This document shows, one piece after another, positions 42,350 to 53,136 of a stretch of 64,000 nt of DNA (positions within the stretch are counted from its first letter, which is position 1; the number at the start of each line of letters is the position of its first letter). Made by a program: the position numbers and the translations under genes. Under the pieces are notes generated by a model, which worked only from the letters and a program-made list of their open reading frames with translations, made no database searches and was not told the origin of the DNA. The stretch is from Piromyces finnis finn (lineage: Eukaryota > Fungi > Neocallimastigomycota), in NCBI GenBank assembly GCA_002104945.1, contig MCFH01000020.1:496001-560000 (forward strand), read 5' to 3'.

Positions 42350-45300
42350 TTAAAGCTCATCATGACTTGTAGATGATGTTTTGTTGTCTTTTTTATTTTC
42401 TTCTTCTTCATCCTTTTCTTTATTTTCATTAGTTGTTTTTTCTTGATCAGGTGTAGTCCACCATTTTGATAAAAATGAAATATTTTTAGGATCATTGAAA
42501 CAATCCTTAACCCATTGATTTGCTTTATCGAATTGATCTTGATAAAATAATTCCTTTTTAAAAGCATCTGCATCAGAAATATCCTTTTTATTTGCTTGAA
42601 TAAGTTCTCTAGTGATTTCTTCTTGGATATGAATTGCAACTAATGTACCCCAAAGCTCGTTGATAAATTTCTTTTCTTCATCAGAAGCATTATCTTTATC
42701 AGCCTTTTCAGAAACAACATTATTTACTTCCATAAACCACTCTTTAATCCATTGAGCAAAATATCTATATTCCTTTTCACATTTACCATAATTTTCTTCT
42801 GAATTATTAATATTTTCAAGAATTGAATATATAGTAAATGATCCATTTGGTTCTTGTTCTGAGATAAGTTTATTCTTTATTATATCTTGATAACAAGCAA
42901 TAGATGTCTTATCTTCAGTAGTTGATGATGGTATTAATGTGCTTATGACAGATTTTCCTTTTTTATTGGTTTGGAGAGAATCTTTTAATACCTGACTAAA
43001 TTTACCTAAAATTGGATTACTCTTTTCCGAGGTTTCAACCCATTGCTTTAAAATACTTATTAAATCTTCACTCTCTTTTTGTAAAGTTATTTCGAATTTT
43101 TCATTTTTTAATATATTTAATATTAAGGTGGTGCCAATAAATTTATTAAATTCTTCTAATTCACTTGGTAATACTTGATTTTCAATTTCCTTTAATTCTT
43201 TACTCCATTCTTCAGTTAAAACCTTACCGTAATATTTTTCTATTACTTCTTTAATATTGGAAAAGTATAACGAGCCATCTTCATTAATAAGTAATTTTAA
43301 AGATTTTAATAAATGTTCTTTCTTTTGGTTAATTGAAATTAAAATTTTTTGACGAACATCTTGAATTGGGTTACGTTGTTGTTGTAATGAAATCCATTTT
43401 TCTGATTTTCCTTTAGCAAGTTCCCATTCATTTTGCAAGTCACCGAGGAAATCAGTGAAAATGACACATGCAATACTAGTACCAATTAATTTATCAAATT
43501 GATCAACAATAGCAGGGTAGATTTCCATATAATTGGTCTTAATGCCTTCTAATTCTTTTTTCCATTCATTAGAAAATTCTTCACCATAAGTTGGACTAAT
43601 TATATTATTGAGTAAATCAGATAATTTGAAGGAGCCATCGAAATTTTGATATTGAATTAAATTATTAAATAAAAGTCTTTGACTATTTTCCTTTGCTATA
43701 GAATTAGCATTAGACATCTTAATAATATTAATATCGCTTATATCAAATACATTTTCATTAGCACGGAAATAAATTTCTTCTTTTTCTTCTTCTTCTTTAG
43801 CTGTATCAATGTCTTCAGGATTAATTATTACTTCATTTAATGCAGCACTAGAAAAAGATCTTTTTTTGTTACCACCACCAATGTGATTTATAGATTGATC
43901 TCTAGTAACAAAAACATTTCTTGATGGAATAATAATGGTTTTATCTTCACTCTCTGATTTGTTTTTTTCATCATTATGTTTAATACATAAGAATGATGTA
44001 AATTTCGACATGATTTGATATTTTGTAGAAACCTCAACAATTTTTCTTTTGATTTTATTAAATATAGCTAATGCATTTTCATCATTATCTAATCTTTTCT
44101 TATATTCTTCAGAAAAGTGATATTTAGATGTTCCTTCTTGTAATTCTCTGATTAAATTTGTAGCAGCAAGTGAATGAATGAGTTTTCCATTTTTTAATTC
44201 TTCAACATCATTAAATGTAATAGTTTCAGTTTTAATGGTACCATCATTAAGCTTATAATTAATTTCAATTGGTGATGGGACTAAAGGCTTTTCAGAAATA
44301 GTATAAATAGAATATTCATAACCAATCCTCATTATAGGAGATTTATACGGAATTTGTTCTAAATCATCACTCTTAACAATTTTAGATGTGTTCTTTTCTT
44401 TCCAAGTAATAGTATAATCCTGGATAAATGGAACTAATACATTCTTTAATTGAAGTAAGACCTTCTTTTCTAATCTTTCACCTTCGGTGACAAATAACGA
44501 CATTCCATTGCCATTTCTTGCAATACCAGACACTAAATAATGACTAACAGAATCTCCAATACCAAAGGAATAAATTACTGCTTTTTGTTTTTGGGTATTT
44601 TCTCTTACCAAATCAATTACGGCTTCAACATCCCAAATTTCACCATCTTGTCATATATCACAATTAAAATATAAATTGTAAAATTTTATAAAGATTTTAA
44701 TAAAATAAATGTAATTAAATAACATTTGTTAATATATGTTATATATATATATTTAATTTAATTAATAATAAGAATTTAATAATTACCAGTAAGTAAAAAG
44801 ATAGAACGATTATATCCTTCTTGAATTTCTGTGCTGTATATATATTCCAATGCATCTTTCATTTCAGTACCTCCCATTGATGCATCCATATTTTTAACAT
44901 ATTCAACTGCTTCGTTTAATGATTTTTCGCTGTATTTAACACTCTTTTCAAAAAGACTTTCGTATAAAGATCCAAATTTTACAATATTAAAGTAACTATC
45001 CTAATAATATTTTAATTTTTGAGGTGTTAAGATAAAATTTATATTTCAGTATTACTGATTAATAGTAATAAATTAATTATTCAAATATTAAAAATATGAA
45101 TTTAATTACAGTTGGCATAGATTTTAAAAACAAATTTAATGCATCCTTTAAATATTCAAGTTTCCATCCATTCATTGATCCTGATCTATTTCATTAAATT
45201 GAGTAAAGTAATAACAAAAGCAGTTTTATTTTAATTATTAATGATCTTATTAATGCAATAGCAATATAAATAGATATATATTAATGACTTACTGATCAAT

Positions 45301-46746
45301 TAAAAAGATAATTTCTACTTTTGAGTTTTCATTTTCATTTAAAACAAAATTTGGGCTTAAAGTTAATAGAGTAGCGTAAGATTTTAATTCTTCATTATAT
45401 TCAATAAGGACTTTATTTTTTTTTAAATTTTCAACTTCGACATCTAATACGAAATCTTTATCTAAATAACCTTTATCTGAGCTTAGAGTTACAGTAGCTT
45501 CATTATTTTTGTTTTCGGATATTTTTGTACTTATTTCATATGAAGGTGATTCAATGCTATTAATTCTTCCACTCATTTCAACGTCAACATTTATATCAAG
45601 AGTATAATTTACATTTTCAGCATAGTTTATATTTCTTTCTTTTGAAGATACAGTTGAATTAGTGCTTTTATATCTTGGAGCAATAATATTTGGTATTATA
45701 AAAGTAATTTTATTATTTATTGAATTTAACTTGGTAACATAGGTCATTTTTACATGTACGGTTTGTTTTGGTCTTAAACTTCCAATGCTAACTTGAAATA
45801 CTTTAATATATATATAATCAATGAAGTAACATTATGTTTGTTTGTTAATTATATATTAGATTATATATTAGTAATTCAAAATTACATTTATTTTATTTCA
45901 AAATTTTGTTACCATCTTTAAATTCTTCAGTTAACAAAAATGCTGAATTACCATCCTGTAAATAATTTTTGTAAATTATGATAAAACATAATACCGAATT
46001 AATTAGAAAATACATATATTAAACACAAAGCAAATTATATAATTACCTTCATTTCTTTCTTGTACATTTGATATGCTTCATCATTTTCATATATTTTTGC
46101 ATGATATGATTGACCATCAATATCAGCTTCAAACGATTCAACTGCTGCCTCAGAATCTAATGGAAAATTGTATATGGCTTCAATAATATCTTCATCATTA
46201 TTAATATAAGTTTGCTGAATATAGACTATTATTAATAGCAAATATATAATAAAATCATAAACAAAATAATAAATAACAATAATTAGTAATAATAAAAATT
46301 AAATTCTTTTCAATTTTCCCAAAATCTTACTTTTGACTTAGGAAAATAAAATAAATTAATATAATAAATTTAATTATATCTTTTTATTTTTAGTATTACC
46401 TTCAGCGACAGTATCCTTAACTATTGTTTGTTTATTTTTTAAAATTTATATTGTTATAAAAATAGTTCATTAAAGAATATAAGTTAAATTATAAAAATAA
46501 AAATAGATATAAATAATTAATCAATATTATATTTTAAGTTTTGTATTATTAATAATGAAATATTTTTAATTTATGATTTTCATCGTTATTATTATTATTA
46601 TTATTATGTTTTAATAATCAATTACTTTTTGAATAAACTACAACTTTATTTAAGGGAATTTCTTGAAGTAAATCTGAGTCTTTATATAAACTTGCTATTA
46701 CTGTTTTTATTATCACAGTAAAAAAAAATAAAAGAATTTTTTTCAT
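42350..46746 (-). CDS. VIT plus von Willebrand A domain protein (VWA5A-like) with signal peptide and C-terminal HDEL (1152 aa)
   Basis: 8 exons (46746-46626, 46420-46400, 46225-46047, 45955-45913, 45800-45293, 45185-45110, 45000-44787, 44646-42350) total 3459 nt in frame. VIT motif EAIYNFPLDSEAAVESFEADIDG; vWA MIDAS IFLIDQSGSM, GGTEM, LTDGE; ends ...TSHDEL*. Confidence 0.9.
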
Positions 46747-47412: not shown

Positions 47413-50400
47413 ATGTTTTCAGCTATTAAGCAAACTCCACATCTTCAACGTTCAAGACAAAAAATAGTTTCATCTTCTAAAAAAGAAAATTCATATTCAG
47501 AACCAGATGAAATCTCAATTACTTCACAAAATATTGTACCATCACCTTTAAAAAAAATACCAATTACACCTCAATATCTTACATGTAATGAAAAAAGAGT
47601 TGTTTCACTTGTTGGTAACATTCCAGTTTATATTCAAGATCTTTTTAAAAAGTATTCTTATGATAAAATCACAGGTGAATTAAATTACACTTCAGGATAT
47701 GCTTACATAATTATTAGTAATAATTGCTATGTTTGGAATTATCAAAAGGTAAATAAATTTTTATTTTCATTTTTTTTTTTTCATCTAATTTATTAATATT
47801 TATATTGGTTACATTTTATTTTCAATATATATTTGATTGATCTTGATTTATTTTTGTTATTTAATATGTTATTATCAAAAAATATAATATAATAATAAAA
47901 AATAACAAAAGAATTCAAATGATGTTAAAATTTTCCAATTACCAGTTTCAAGAAAATATTTTGTCAGTTTTATTCCAATGTCAATGACCAATACTTATAA
48001 TATTGGATTAATGGTTTGTACTTATGAAGGAATTATAAAATATTGGTTTGATATTTCTTCAAATCCATCAAATTACATTTCTACAAATTTAGAATTAAAT
48101 AATGATAATTGTTCCTGCTTAGAAAAGAATGAGGTAAAGTAATTTTAATAATAATAGTAATAGTAAAAAATTGAATCATTCATTTTTTATTTCAATTTCA
48201 AATTTTTTTTTTTTTTACACAAATCTAGACTAGTAGTCTTATTGTAGGAACTACTAATGGTCATTTACATCTAGTAAATATTGTTAACCTAAGAGGAACC
48301 CCTGAATTAATGTGTAGTCAAATTATTAATTCAGTTGGTTTATTTCATAAAATGAGTTCATTTTTATTTTCAGATTCAAATAATAAAAATATTATCAAAA
48401 TTTTACCTCAACCTGAAATTAATAATCTAAGGTAATTGTTTTATTTAAATATAATTATTATTAAAATTTCATTATATATTTATAAAGAAAATCTAATAAA
48501 TAAAAATTAAACAGAGATGTCTATGTAATTACTTCTCAATCAATTCAATTATGGGAATTTAAAAATAATAATCAGGAAAAAATCATTTTTGATAAACCTG
48601 TATTAAATATTATGAATGAATTATTTATCCCACCAAAAGACCAAAATGAAATTAAAGAAAAATATAATCCAGAAGTTAAGATTATTGATTGTGATATTAC
48701 AAGGTTTATAATAGATTAATAGATTTATAATTTAATAAAAACACATCTTATGAATGTAATATTTAAAAAAAATATTTTAATTAAAAAATATTTATAGAGA
48801 AAACCAAATTTTATTTTTGATTTCATACAAGTTAAATAACGAAGTTCAAAAATATCATATGAAAAGTAATGCTATGGAAGAAGATTTAAAACCAACTTAT
48901 TCATTTGCTTTGGTTTTTTGTAATATTGAACAAGATGGCATTAAAGTTTCAAACGTTAAATTAATTGAAAAATCTGTAAATATATAAATTGCTATTATTT
49001 TAAAAATTATTTTCTTGGAATTCTTAAGTTTCAAAAATTAAACTAAATTATTTAAATTATATATAATAGGTTACTAAAAAGGATTATGAGGCTAAACTTG
49101 TATTACCAAATAGAGGACCAGTTATTTGTATATTATTTGAAAATACTATTGTTTTATCAACAACTGGAAAAGGTAAAATAAAAGTAAGATAGAAAATAAA
49201 ATTTTTGAAACTTATATTTTGAAACTTATTTATTTTATTTTTCATTTAAAAAAATAGATGTTACTTATAAAGAAATTTTCAGTATTAACAATAAACTTAT
49301 TGGTTTTGGAGTTGATAGATCAAAAATATGGAATCCAGAAGCTGATAGTCAAGAATCTATTCATATTTTATGTACAAATAAAAAAATATTCGATATTGAA
49401 ATCAGCATTGAAAATATTTATTTTGAAAATCATAGGTATTAATATATTAATAGTAATTATATATATAAAATTATAAATAAAGTTTCGAAAGTAATAATCT
49501 TAATTTTATAATATCATAATTAATGGTATGAATATAGTGAATTTATTGATACAAAGAAGGTAAGTTTATCTTATTTTAATTAAACTTTTTATTTGTTAAC
49601 AATATGTTTAATATTGATAATCATAAATTTATAATCATATTATAAATCAGCATGAACTTTACTCTTACTTAGAACAAGTTGTATTTTTCGACGATGATGA
49701 GGTTTTTATTATTATAATAATATATAAAAATTATATATAGATTTTAATTATGCTATCAATGATAATATTATTAATATTTTTTATTTTACAATAATTAATT
49801 AATATAAAAGAATCCAATTCATTTCGAACTTCCAAATTGTTCAACATCTGATCTAGAAATTGTTTCCAAGCAATTAAGTGACAGCATTTTAAATTCAAGT
49901 AAATTATCTAATTTATTTAATTTTCATTTATAATATGCATATCCTTATAATAGATTTTCTAATTATAAATATCTTTTATATTTTCATTTTATAGATTCAG
50001 AATTCTTACCACCAGTTATTGATCTAAAGAGTTACTTGTCTGAAAAATTGTTACGTCTTCAGAAAATTCTCAACTTCCTTAAAGAAAAGAATAGATTAAA
50101 TGGAGTAATTTATATATTATATATTATATTTATATTTATATTTATATTTATGATGTCTTAATTCTGTAACAATTAAATAATAATAATTTTTATTTCTATA
50201 TAAAGATTTCATTATCATCAAAATTAGGTCTTTTCTGGAATACAGAGAAAGAAGCAGCTGCAATAGAATTATGGAAATATACCAATTCTAAAATAGGGTA
50301 ATTACTAATAATATTTTATTTAGATTTGATTTCTGAAGTATTATTAATTTTTTTTTTTTTGGTTAATATATGGTATATCTTGAAATTTATGAAAACAGCA

Positions 50401-53136
50401 AAAGCGATAGTAATAGCAAACCATATCTTAATATTTTAGCTAATATTATTACTGCATTTTATAAAAACAAAAGTATTTCATCAGAAAGAGATGATACAAT
50501 AAGAAGCTTCTTTTATAATCATGTATGTATATTATATATATTTAATTATTCCAAAATAAATGATTTAATAATAAAGTTAATTTTCCTTTATTAATACTCT
50601 TAAAAGGTTGCTGATATTCCTTATCTTATAAAATTTATACCAAATGCTAATTCTGAAGTTGAACAAATTGAAATCAATGAAATTATATTAGTATGTATAA
50701 TAATTTAATATATCAAAGTGTGTGAATTATTTTATTAATTATTAAAAACTTCCTTTAAATGCATATATAACATATATATATATATAGATTATTTTAGAAT
50801 CCGCATATGCTTACAGAAAACAAAATGGTTCTGAATATGAATTAGATGATAATTCAATTTCTGGAGTCGAACCATGGACTGGTAATACATAAAATTTTAA
50901 TAAATAAAATAATTAAGAATGGATTAATAAAATATTAAATATATAAACATTTCATTATAAAATATTATTAGCTTCCGAAGCTATCTTAAATATTTTCCAA
51001 ATTAACTTTGAAAATAGTGAAGCATACTTAAATAACAATAAAATATATCCAGATGTTGAAAATTTAAAGGATGAAAATGTTATTTCAAATATCGAAAAAA
51101 GAAAGATATTAGAAGATCAATTAGTTAAATTAGCTTCAATAGTTTTGAAAATATTTAATGAACGTATTTCATTCATAAAGTAATATTTATTTATTCATAT
51201 ATATATTATATTTATTTATTAATTAAAATAAATATTAATTTAATGTATTTTTTAAAAAACATTATAACTAATGTGATAATATAATTGAATAAAAAGGAAA
51301 ACTGAAATGGTTGCTGTATTAAAAGCATTACAGGACGAATATCTTGAAAAACGTTCATCATTTATAAAACCATTGGGTAAATTTTTAAAGAATATATTAT
51401 TATATAGTATAGAAATTATTATTAATGAATTTTTTATATATTCTTTTTTTTTTAAAAAAAAAATAGGAACTATAAATAGAATTGATACCGCAATTAAATT
51501 AGCAGAAGAATATCATGATTTTGATACATTAGTTGAATTATCAATTAATAATGAAGAAAAACAACATTACTATATTGATCAATATGGTAATGAATATGCT
51601 GATATATTATATGACAAATTACAATTGAAAAACAATTATTATAAACTTTTAGAACAAGATGATAAATATAATACTACATTGAAAAACTATTTTGATAAAA
51701 AAGATATTCCTTTAATATCATGGATTCATGATATAAAATTAAAGAATTATGGTAATGCTCATAGAAAATTAATAAAGTCAGGTGGAATTATTAAGCAATC
51801 TCAAAGAAAGGTAATTAATTATTAATTTAGTAATTATTTTTTTTATATGATAAATATAATAAGAAAATAGTAATGCGATAAATACTTTTTAATATATATT
51901 ATTATTACAGCAACAATTAAGTATTGCTAAATTAGCTCTTTTAGCTGCGAAAAAAAGAGAAAATTTATCTATTAATAAAGACGATAATAAAGCTCAAGAT
52001 TATATTGAAAAATTACATAGTAAATAAGAATTATTAAATATTTTAAAAATTAAATATAAAAGTCTAATAAAAAAATATTAATTTTTTCTTCTTAAAAATA
52101 TACTATATAAAAAGAAACTGCTTTCCAATTAAAATTTGTTGACGTTTTAAATGCTTACAGAGAAAAATTAATCAATAATTTCAGAGATAATCCAGAATAT
52201 AAGGATTTAAGCGAAGAAGAAAAAAGTAAACCTGAAAACATAATTAATGCATATTATCAAGATGAAAGTGATCAATACAAAAATGACTATAAATCATTTT
52301 ATGAACTTCACAAAAAATATTCAAAAGAAATATTGAGTGAAAATATGATCAAGCTTGATGAATTTATTGATTTTTTGACCTTTGAAGGTCTTCTTTTAAA
52401 TGGTGATAATTCAATTGAAAATTTCTTATATGCCATACAATTCTATAGATACTTGGAGGATGTACGCATTTATATATACTTATAATTATAGTGATGATTT
52501 AATTATATTTTCGGGCTATACTAATTTATAATATAATAATTTTATTAAAATTTAAAAATAAAAATAGGAAATGTCTAAAGATGATCGTGAATGTATTTTA
52601 CAAGGTTTATGGAGAAGAGCCTTAATAAATACAAAGTAAATGTTTAATAATATAGGATCTTAATAAAAGTATAAAATATATTTTTTTAATAATTTTTAAT
52701 ATTTTTTTTTTAATTTAGTTGGGATAAATTAAAAATGGATATCAACGATGAACAAATTAACGATATGCTTGAAAACACTGCCTTCTTTAAATTAATATTA
52801 TACTTAAAATCAGGTAAAGTTAAACATATATTTATATATGTAATAGAGAATGATATATAAATAAATATGAATTTTAATACTAATTTAAAATTTTATTAAT
52901 TATATTCATTCGCTTACTCATTATTTTATTTACAACAAATAGAAAAATTATTTAAATATATTAGAAAACCACAAGATTGCTATGAAATCCCAAATCTTGA
53001 TAAAAAGTATCCATGGGCATCAGAGGAAGAAAAATTATCACTTTCTGAAGAATACAAAAAAGAAAAACAACAATTAGGATTCTTTATTACTCATTTTAAT
53101 ATTAATGATATTATAGAACAAATTATTAATTCTTAA
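47413..53136 (+). CDS. NUP133: Nucleoporin Nup133
   Basis: Multi-exon gene. N-terminal propeller motifs (YAYIIISNNCYVWNY, GLMVCTYEGIIKYWFDIS) and C-terminal helical motifs (LAEEYHDFDTLVEL, ISWIHDI, LSIAKLALLAA, LWRRALI). Ends IINS* at 53136. Confidence 0.85.

Follow-up and report, generated by a model that had tools for sequence, protein, structure and literature searches.

The 64,000-nucleotide stretch of Piromyces finnis DNA analysed here (the window) carries a VIT-vWA gene whose product appears to begin with a signal peptide and to end in HDEL, which raises the question of whether a member of this family resides in the lumen of the endoplasmic reticulum (ER), as an earlier note made from the sequence alone had proposed. 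The gene lies on the minus strand (46746..42350), and its eight exons form an open reading frame of 3459 nt encoding 1152 amino acids. Its extent is supported by the gene model, spliced RNA contigs and orthologs.

42350..46746, minus strand: whole coding region, 1152 amino acids plus stop
46746-46626, 46420-46400, 46225-46047 and 45955-45913, minus strand: exons 1-4
45800-45293, 45185-45110, 45000-44787 and 44646-42350, minus strand: exons 5-8
46400..46420, minus strand: micro-exon 2 (21 nt), encoding IKDTVAE, part of the first VIT strand; supported by model and RNA

The introns are 91-205 nt long and follow the GT..AG rule throughout. In each of four RNA runs from three studies, one contig of 3.4-3.6 kb matches the exons without the introns, and five exon junctions were recovered in all four runs. 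The joint between exons 2 and 3 (46225/46400) was recovered in one run (X4), while in three runs (X1-X3) exons 1 and 3 share one contig with 15 unplaced letters between them, which correspond to the 21-nt exon 2 minus its overhangs. The gene is real, transcribed and spliced according to the model. The earlier note had suggested checking exons 1 and 2 against RNA and had allowed for a true start elsewhere, with no signal peptide. Exon 1, including the ATG, is present in the transcript contigs, and the exon 2 joint is the one seen in X4. Additionally, an in-frame stop stands eight codons 5' of the ATG, and the second Met is residue 98, within the VIT domain. These observations speak against a start elsewhere. 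The divergent neighbour of the gene is Nup133-like in both P. finnis and A. robustus, indicating that the locus is orthologous between the two.

The protein consists, in order, of a signal-like peptide, a VIT domain, a vWA domain, a disordered linker, three helical repeats, a charged tail and HDEL. Pfam was run on the P. finnis protein exon by exon, and the full-length analyses used the orthologs P0005 and P0009.

45715..46665, minus strand: VIT domain, about residues 28-150, exons 1-5 (Pfam PF08487, ITIH1 fold match)
44399..45318, minus strand: vWA domain with MIDAS, about residues 283-470 (Pfam PF13768, PDB sequence search)
43709..43966, minus strand: variable linker, residues 615-700 (pLDDT 30-48 in the equivalent stretch of an ortholog model)

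The VIT domain matches PF08487 on exon 3 with E 9.5e-14, exceeding the gathering score, and the vWA domain matches VWA_3 (PF13768) in exon 7 with E 2e-10. A PDB sequence search matched PARP4 over VIT-vWA (E 2.4e-53) and also ITIH1/4. The MIDAS, which the earlier note had read as intact, is complete, comprising D290-x-S292-x-S294 (DQSGS 290-294, interrupted by intron 5), T361 and D388, and the equivalent residues are invariant among orthologs. Kyte-Doolittle hydropathy reaches 1.6 at the N-terminus alone, and by this measure the protein has no transmembrane segment. The P. finnis protein contains five cysteines, three in invariant columns and two further ones kept in eight of ten orthologs, and only one or two N-x-S/T sequons are well conserved in the orthologs. 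The usual hallmarks of a luminal protein are therefore weak.

46693..46746, minus strand: predicted signal peptide, residues 1-18 (MKK, hydrophobic core, V-I-A), from the sequence pattern, orthologs and RNA
42365..42457, minus strand: low-complexity charged tail that varies in length and sequence (orthologs, pLDDT about 30)
42353..42364, minus strand: C-terminal HDEL, followed by TAA at 42350-42352 (10/10 orthologs)

Both terminal signals described in the earlier note were found as described, and the orthologs, in which it had suggested looking for them, keep both. The leader (M-K-K, hydrophobic stretch, V-I-A, S-L-Y-K) is present in exon 1, which encodes the predicted cleavage context V-I-A / S-L-Y-K. 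A basic and hydrophobic leader ending in x-A is found in all seven sequences with an intact N-terminus, namely P. finnis and six of six such orthologs (P0003, P0004, P0005, P0006, P0009 and P0011), and the n/h/c-region pattern with A at -1 is conserved among them. At the other end, the P. finnis protein terminates in ...TSSTS-HDEL-stop, and HDEL is the C-terminal end of all ten Neocallimastigomycota orthologs, whose sources include at least Piromyces, Anaeromyces and rumen metagenomes. The preceding tail ranges from 26 to 126 aa in these orthologs, and its last 20 residues are 19% identical; the invariance of HDEL beside a drifting tail suggests more than chance. An x[DE]EL terminus is absent from all 267 other relatives retrieved. 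Literature searches found nothing linking HDEL or KDEL to anaerobic gut fungi, nothing on any ER-resident or HDEL-bearing member of the VIT-vWA family, and no description of the gut-fungal protein.

A profile searched against 1.84 billion representatives recovered only three from the gut-fungal orthogroup. The next matches are VWA5A-like proteins of fungi and animals that lack a leader, and with them the score falls from 753 bits to 464. The closest relatives (Glomeromycota, Gonapodya, Calcarisporiella and animals) begin at a conserved "CGL(Y/F)" with no leader, and in a 58-sequence alignment the gut-fungal leader is an addition ahead of this conserved 'GL(Y/F)' start. The earlier note had regarded VWA5A-type proteins as intracellular; a 2023 family survey agrees, listing the fungal/VWA5A clade as wholly intracellular (PMC10539598), and the nearest relatives carry neither leader nor HDEL. 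A quick tree groups the gut-fungal sequences as one monophyletic clade (SH-aLRT 100), whose stem is long (1.38); the exact sister group is not fixed by that tree. In a search for a cytosolic paralog, no named gut-fungal protein outside the orthogroup was present among the best 150 representatives. One AT-rich-looking candidate for such a paralog, P0065, clusters with crustacean VWA5A-like proteins and was rejected. The conservation of leader and HDEL in gut fungi, combined with their absence in the nearest relatives, suggests a lineage-specific relocation of a VWA5A-type scaffold.

The C-terminal half of the protein sets the gut-fungal lineage apart in a further respect. As judged from profile and fold comparisons, it is a triplicated VWA5A/Vwa1 C-terminal domain (CTD), newly recognised here.

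43367..43708, minus strand: CTD repeat 1, residues 701-814, with Q-N-F-D-G-S-F ... E-W-E-L ... K-S-E-K-W
42962..43366, minus strand: CTD repeat 2, residues 815-949 (hhalign to repeat 1; fold match)
42446..42922, minus strand: CTD repeat 3, longer and diverged, residues 963-1121, with invariant Cys 972 and 1010 (hhalign)

Repeats 1 and 2 align by hhalign with a probability of 98.4% (E 5e-15), and the diverged repeat 3 aligns with repeat 1 at 76% (E 2e-5) and with repeat 2 at 72% (E 3e-5). In 63 outgroup proteins of VWA5A-like type, the HMM of repeat 1 matches the lone CTD at the C-terminus, a correspondence also shown in alignment A3. The profile of A3 reaches the CTD of a Trypanosoma brucei VWFA protein (E 0.006), to which repeat 2 has a fold match of Z 10.6 (9e5c_4t). 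Repeat 1 can be superposed on the MINT domain of PARP4 (9bw6_B residues 1570-1713) over 108 residues with an rmsd of 3.9 and Z 8.0, a score still in the range of common helical arrangements. PARP4 was not reached by profile A3 even at E up to 10, and the likeness of repeat 1 to MINT is thus one of fold, with no sequence-profile match. In the structure models, the three CTD copies are joined by flexible linkers like beads on a string. A Foldseek search of the PDB with the 459-aa C-terminal model found nothing significant, the best matches being terpene cyclases and C3d (E 0.56, TM about 0.13), and for this reason no relationship to alpha/alpha-toroids or to the TED is claimed. The TED hairpins of C4, CD109 and A2M gave VIA-align Z scores of 6-6.6, which is helical background.

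The nearest sequence relatives of the gut-fungal protein are VWA5A (BCSC-1) and Dictyostelium Vwa1 (clade B2, PMC10539598). They have in common, in the same order, the VIT domain, the hybrid/vWA domain with MIDAS, the helical/VITpt2 region, a disordered loop and a helical CTD, and the VWA5A/Vwa1-type CTD motif Q-x-F-D-G-S-F ... W-E-L ... K-A/S is present three times in the gut-fungal protein. VWA5A and Vwa1 are cytoplasmic, with a single CTD, no leader and no HDEL, whereas the gut-fungal protein adds the leader, HDEL, three CTDs, a lineage-specific tribasic motif in the linker and, in the tree, a long stem. The entire VIT-vWA-CTD architecture is also seen in a solved structure, that of the T. 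brucei flagellar doublet VWFA protein (9e5c 4s/4t), which Foldseek matched over 907 columns (9e5c_4s, E 1.5e-21). This protein is cytoplasmic and axoneme-associated; it has a single CTD and lacks secretory signals. PARP4 is the closest solved sequence relative across VIT-vWA. Unlike the gut-fungal protein, PARP4 has BRCT and PARP catalytic domains ahead of VIT and is cytosolic inside vaults; with VIT starting at about residue 28, straight after the leader, there is no space for such domains.

The inter-alpha-trypsin inhibitor heavy chains ITIH1-6 resemble the gut-fungal protein in VIT-vWA and in the conserved MIDAS, and they enter the secretory pathway by a signal peptide, as is predicted for the gut-fungal protein. 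Among solved structures, ITIH1 (6fpy) matches the fold of the VIT-vWA body best (E 6e-31, TMt 0.59 with an ortholog model). In contrast, ITIHs are secreted proteins from which a C-terminal propeptide is removed and which become ester-linked to chondroitin sulfate. No Pfam family, including ITI_HC_C, was found on the 764-aa last exon, and the DPHF cleavage and attachment site is absent from the gut-fungal protein, which has CTD repeats and HDEL in place of ITI_HC_C and is nearer in sequence to PARP4/VWA5A than to ITIH. With BiP/Kar2, PDI, calreticulin and GRP94 it shares a cleavable-looking leader, the lack of a membrane segment, a flexible charged tail that presents the tetrapeptide, and an invariant HDEL. 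However, none of these ER residents has a VIT or vWA domain, and no chaperone or oxidoreductase domain can be recognised in the gut-fungal protein.

Taken as a whole, it is probable that the Neocallimastigomycota moved a VWA5A/Vwa1-type scaffold into the secretory pathway and retained it in the ER lumen. The leader would be cut after A18, and a soluble protein of about 130 kDa would fold in the lumen, with molecules escaping to the Golgi brought back by the Erd2/KDEL receptor via HDEL. Through a divalent cation, the MIDAS would contact an acidic side chain on one partner; further partners would dock on the three CTD modules, making the protein a multivalent luminal adaptor. Such a role would fit the family, as MIDAS vWA domains and MINT are protein-binding modules; MINT, CTD-like in fold, is proven as one by its binding of MVP (PMC12280208).

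The linker contains a further invariant feature that may bear on whether the protein remains intact.

43853..43867, minus strand: K-K-R-S-F, candidate Kex2/furin-type site in the linker (10/10 orthologs)

The pattern [KR][KR]R[STA]F occurs once per protein at an identical alignment position in all ten orthologs and in none of the 267 other relatives. This lineage-specific K-K/R-R-[STA]-F motif, newly recognised, may be a processing site and hints at processing in the Golgi, for which a purely ER-resident protein would have no need. It therefore leaves room for a pro-protein, in which HDEL would hold or retrieve a precursor transiently until a late-Golgi Kex2/furin-type protease cut after K-K/R-R. 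The VIT-vWA body, freed of HDEL, would then be secreted or surface-bound as an ITIH-like adhesin, and the HDEL-bearing CTD repeats would go back to the ER as a pro-domain or escort. The position of the motif in an otherwise variable segment of pLDDT 30-48 (ortholog model) is consistent with this route, as is the presence of just three [KR]R dipeptides in the P. finnis protein. In addition, ITIH relatives mature by removal of a C-terminal propeptide (PMC10539598), and other lineages have independently evolved VIT-vWA proteins of surface type, in which a leader is combined with a hydrophobic C-terminus. However, HDEL retrieval lies upstream of the Kex2 compartment, so that most molecules should miss the protease; the motif is equally explicable as a binding or structural element, and the strong conservation of the CTD repeats suggests a function of their own. 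Processing of this kind is accordingly considered unlikely.

The two ends of the protein could also be read differently. If the hydrophobic N-terminus stayed uncleaved, it would anchor the protein in the membrane in type II orientation, with the body in the lumen, and residues 4-23 do form one helix in an ortholog model. Such an anchor is quite improbable, given that the hydrophobic core spans only about 10-15 residues and is broken by K or R/N, and that small residues, x-A, follow it at -3/-1 in every ortholog. HDEL, moreover, is the signal of soluble ER residents, and membrane residents typically carry a KKxx-type signal. A cytosolic protein, with its true start elsewhere or with a leader and HDEL that do not function, would agree with the uniformly leaderless close relatives outside the phylum and with the description of the fungal family as intracellular. 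It is the most doubtful reading, and highly improbable, as exon 1 is joined to the remainder in the transcript contigs, the upstream stop leaves a next Met that would truncate VIT, and leader and HDEL are conserved amid drifting surroundings.

A more speculative proposal, which has only a small chance of being correct, is that the protein is a Kex2-cut two-part secretory device, or else an uncut luminal scaffold for the assembly of very large secreted enzyme complexes. In a two-part device, the half bearing the tripled CTD and HDEL would escort the VIT-vWA half or hold it inactive. The cut would then give rise to a MIDAS-dependent product resembling ITIH, which would work at the cell surface or in the cellulosome as an adhesin or assembly factor.

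VIT-vWA proteins such as VWA5A, PARP4 and the ITIHs are widespread, and their intracellular members are poorly understood. Unlike the intracellular clade of the survey, an entire fungal phylum has a version that keeps signals for secretion and ER retention and bears its putative partner-binding domain in three copies. With the scaffold retained in the ER lumen as proposed, this would be a clean natural case of a compartment switch through two short added signals, and it may point to luminal partners particular to organisms whose secreted enzyme complexes are unusually large.

The gene under study lies on the minus strand of the window, where G+C is 19.5%, and has an open reading frame of 3459 nt (1152 codons) in eight exons, with all introns GT..AG and 91-205 nt in length. 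The closest ortholog of its product, at 73% identity, is found in Piromyces sp. E2.

46746-46626, 46420-46400, 46225-46047, 45955-45913, 45800-45293, 45185-45110, 45000-44787 and 44646-42350, minus strand: the eight exons
46400-46420, minus strand: micro-exon 2 (21 nt), part of the first VIT strand, supported by RNA contigs

An in-frame stop is located eight codons 5' of the ATG, and the next methionine, residue 98, is within the VIT domain. As the earlier note had read from the DNA, the N-terminus consists of M-K-K, a hydrophobic stretch and V-I-A before S-L-Y-K, the DQSGS motif of the MIDAS is intact (intron 5 splits it), and at the C-terminus a charged tail is followed by HDEL-TAA.

In four public RNA runs from three studies (X1-X4), sampled words of the gene stretch are present at 0.66-0.72, approximately its exonic share. 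Each run yielded one intron-free contig of 3.4-3.6 kb, reaching from 42264, 42291 or 42436 to 46745, or in X4 to 46225 plus the exon 2 joint, and CT..AC joints (GT..AG on the minus strand) occur at the modelled coordinates of introns 3-7 in all four runs. The RNA check of exons 1 and 2 proposed with the original prediction bore out the model: the joint 46225/46400 between exons 3 and 2 is seen in X4, while in X1-X3 exons 1 and 3 share a contig, with 15 unplaced letters between them that equal the 21-nt exon 2 minus overhangs. Because RNA contigs span exon 1 to exon 3, the leader exon belongs to the mature transcript, the contigs being silent on expression level and the exact 5' end. The transcribed gene encodes a leader, VIT and vWA domains with a MIDAS, a linker, three CTD repeats, a tail and HDEL. 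X1-X3 match the window within the gene, and X4 differs at 44051 (G>A), 45621 (C>T) and 45753 (C>T), probably through strain variation. Low-depth contigs with unrelated flanks at 46431-46497, part of intron 1, probably represent low-complexity sequence that other loci share, and not an alternative exon.

Nine orthologs were retrieved by a word-based search, and a Pecoramyces fragment was added by a representative search. As the ER-residence prediction would have it, a leader is found in 7/7 intact N-termini: the start is basic, 10-15 hydrophobic residues form the core, and x-A precedes a conserved L-Y-(K/N/G). P0001, P0002, P0007 and P0008, ortholog models that are 5'-truncated or mis-started, were left out of this count. 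Outside the leader, no window reaches 1.6 in a Kyte-Doolittle scan. HDEL ends all ten full C-termini, the window protein included. The tail from S-K-W-W, the last conserved motif, to HDEL ranges from 26 to 126 residues, and mean identity over its last 20 residues is only 19%. An invariant HDEL on a drifting tail is the pattern expected for selection on the terminal tetrapeptide, with the tail as a flexible spacer.

Searching 1.84 billion cluster representatives with a profile recovered three from the orthogroup (1744, 1139 and 753 bits), after which the score drops to 464 bits; next in rank are proteins of Rhizophagus, Diversispora, Gonapodya, Calcarisporiella and Paraphysoderma, and a fish VWA5A. 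These next-ranked relatives have no leader and start M-x(0-20)-C-G-L-(Y/F); in a 58-sequence alignment, the gut fungi have their leader added immediately before this C-G-L-(Y/F) motif. No x[DE]EL C-terminus occurs among 267 non-orthologous relatives. By these comparisons, leader and HDEL are both conserved and specific to the phylum. Four relatives (P0075 of Anaeramoeba, P0122 of Rotaria, P0142, and P0149 of Leptophrys) combine a leader-like N-terminus with a strongly hydrophobic C-terminus, and they look like independent entries into the secretory pathway as proteins of a surface-anchored type. The orthogroup forms a clade with SH-aLRT support of 100, and its stem is long, at 1.38 changes per column; the tree does not settle its sister group. 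The first intron falls at the same codon in the P. finnis and Anaeromyces robustus genes, and since both have a Nup133-like gene as divergent neighbour upstream, the two orthologous loci are syntenic.

47413-51825, plus strand: Nup133-like gene, divergent upstream neighbour (Nucleoporin_N E 8.9e-5, just below the gathering score; Nucleoporin_C E 1.1e-9)
L001:1-5044, minus strand: Nup133-like neighbour at the A. robustus locus

Exon 3 matches Pfam VIT (E 9.5e-14) and exon 7 VWA_3 (E 2e-10), and the complete set of MIDAS residues is invariant across orthologs. Searched against the PDB, a profile of five full-length orthologs matches PARP4 over the VIT-vWA region (E 2.4e-53), with ITIH4 and ITIH1 weaker. 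An AlphaFold model of the A. robustus ortholog, from the 58-sequence alignment (mean pLDDT 78.8), is confident in the body at residues 35-630 and matches the fold of ITIH1 (6fpy; E 6e-31, TMt 0.59) and a Trypanosoma brucei axonemal VWFA domain-containing protein (9e5c_4s; E 1.5e-21 over 907 columns). The latter, a flagellar doublet protein (PDB 9e5c, chains 4s/4t), has the complete VIT-vWA-CTD architecture and appears to be the only solved VWA5A-type structure with the CTD included.

Residues 701-1121 comprise three repeats, R1-R3, related in hhalign comparisons of ortholog sub-alignments (R1-R2 probability 98.4%, E 5e-15; R1-R3 76%, E 2e-5; R2-R3 72%, E 3e-5). In 63 outgroup proteins the R1 HMM matches a domain present once, at the C-terminus, and the motif Q-x-F-D-G-S-F ... 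(W)-A/G-T ... E-W-E-L-V ... K-A/S-E-x-W is common to both. The unit is the CTD known from human VWA5A and Dictyostelium Vwa1, which in those proteins forms a bundle of helices with predicted docking on the vWFA domain (PMC10539598); in AlphaFold models each repeat is all-helical and confident, with low-confidence joints. The T. brucei CTD superposes with R2 (VIA-align Z 10.6) and is matched by the CTD profile A3 (E 0.006). R1 also resembles the MVP-binding MINT domain of PARP4 (9bw6_B 1570-1713; VIA-align Z 8.0, 15% identity). As the A3 profile does not reach PARP4, this likeness is one of structure only; its interest lies in the proven role of MINT in protein docking (PMC12280208). Two invariant cysteines of R3 (42446-42922, minus strand), C972 and C1010, could form a luminal disulfide.

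The 2023 survey of VIT/vWFA proteins places fungal proteins and VWA5A in an entirely intracellular clade (PMC10539598), and luminal hallmarks are weak, with three invariant cysteine columns (two in R3) and one N-R-S sequon near the MIDAS Asp.

44788-44811, minus strand: N-R-S sequon (N380) directly before the MIDAS strand, ..G-Y-N-R-S-I-F-L-L-T-D-G-E
43853-43867, minus strand: K-K-R-S-F (residues 648-652) in the variable linker that joins the body to the CTD repeats

The sequon adjoins the MIDAS Asp in 7/8 orthologs; the wider alignment, mostly of leaderless relatives, has x-R-Q there as its consensus. N380 may be a glycosylation site acquired after relocation. A cytosolic protein with non-functional signals is very improbable, given signals so conserved. 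A signal-anchored membrane form, with the leader as its anchor, is only slightly less improbable. A pro-protein processed in the Golgi, though still unlikely, is the strongest of these alternatives. K-K-R-S-F, new relative to the earlier note, has Kex2/furin-type form and may be a processing site; [KR][KR]R[STA]F occurs exactly once, at the same alignment position, in 10/10 orthologs and nowhere in the 267 relatives, and the ortholog model gives this linker pLDDT 30-48.

The reading as an ER-lumen adaptor is probable as a whole, mainly as regards localisation and architecture, with the adaptor function less firm. What the earlier note saw in the sequence is confirmed, and the ER-lumen residence predicted from it is supported in part, through the conserved, phylum-specific leader and HDEL and the transcribed leader exon. 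From established knowledge of signal peptides, the leader would direct co-translational import and be cleaved after A18, and the soluble protein would reside in the lumen, retrieved from the Golgi by the Erd2/KDEL receptor. By analogy with the family, the MIDAS would bind an acidic residue of a partner in a metal-dependent manner, and the three CTD modules would add contacts, giving a multivalent adaptor. A literature search found no published H/KDEL-bearing member of the family; the gut-fungal protein would be a VWA5A-type protein that has switched compartment, with its CTD tripled.
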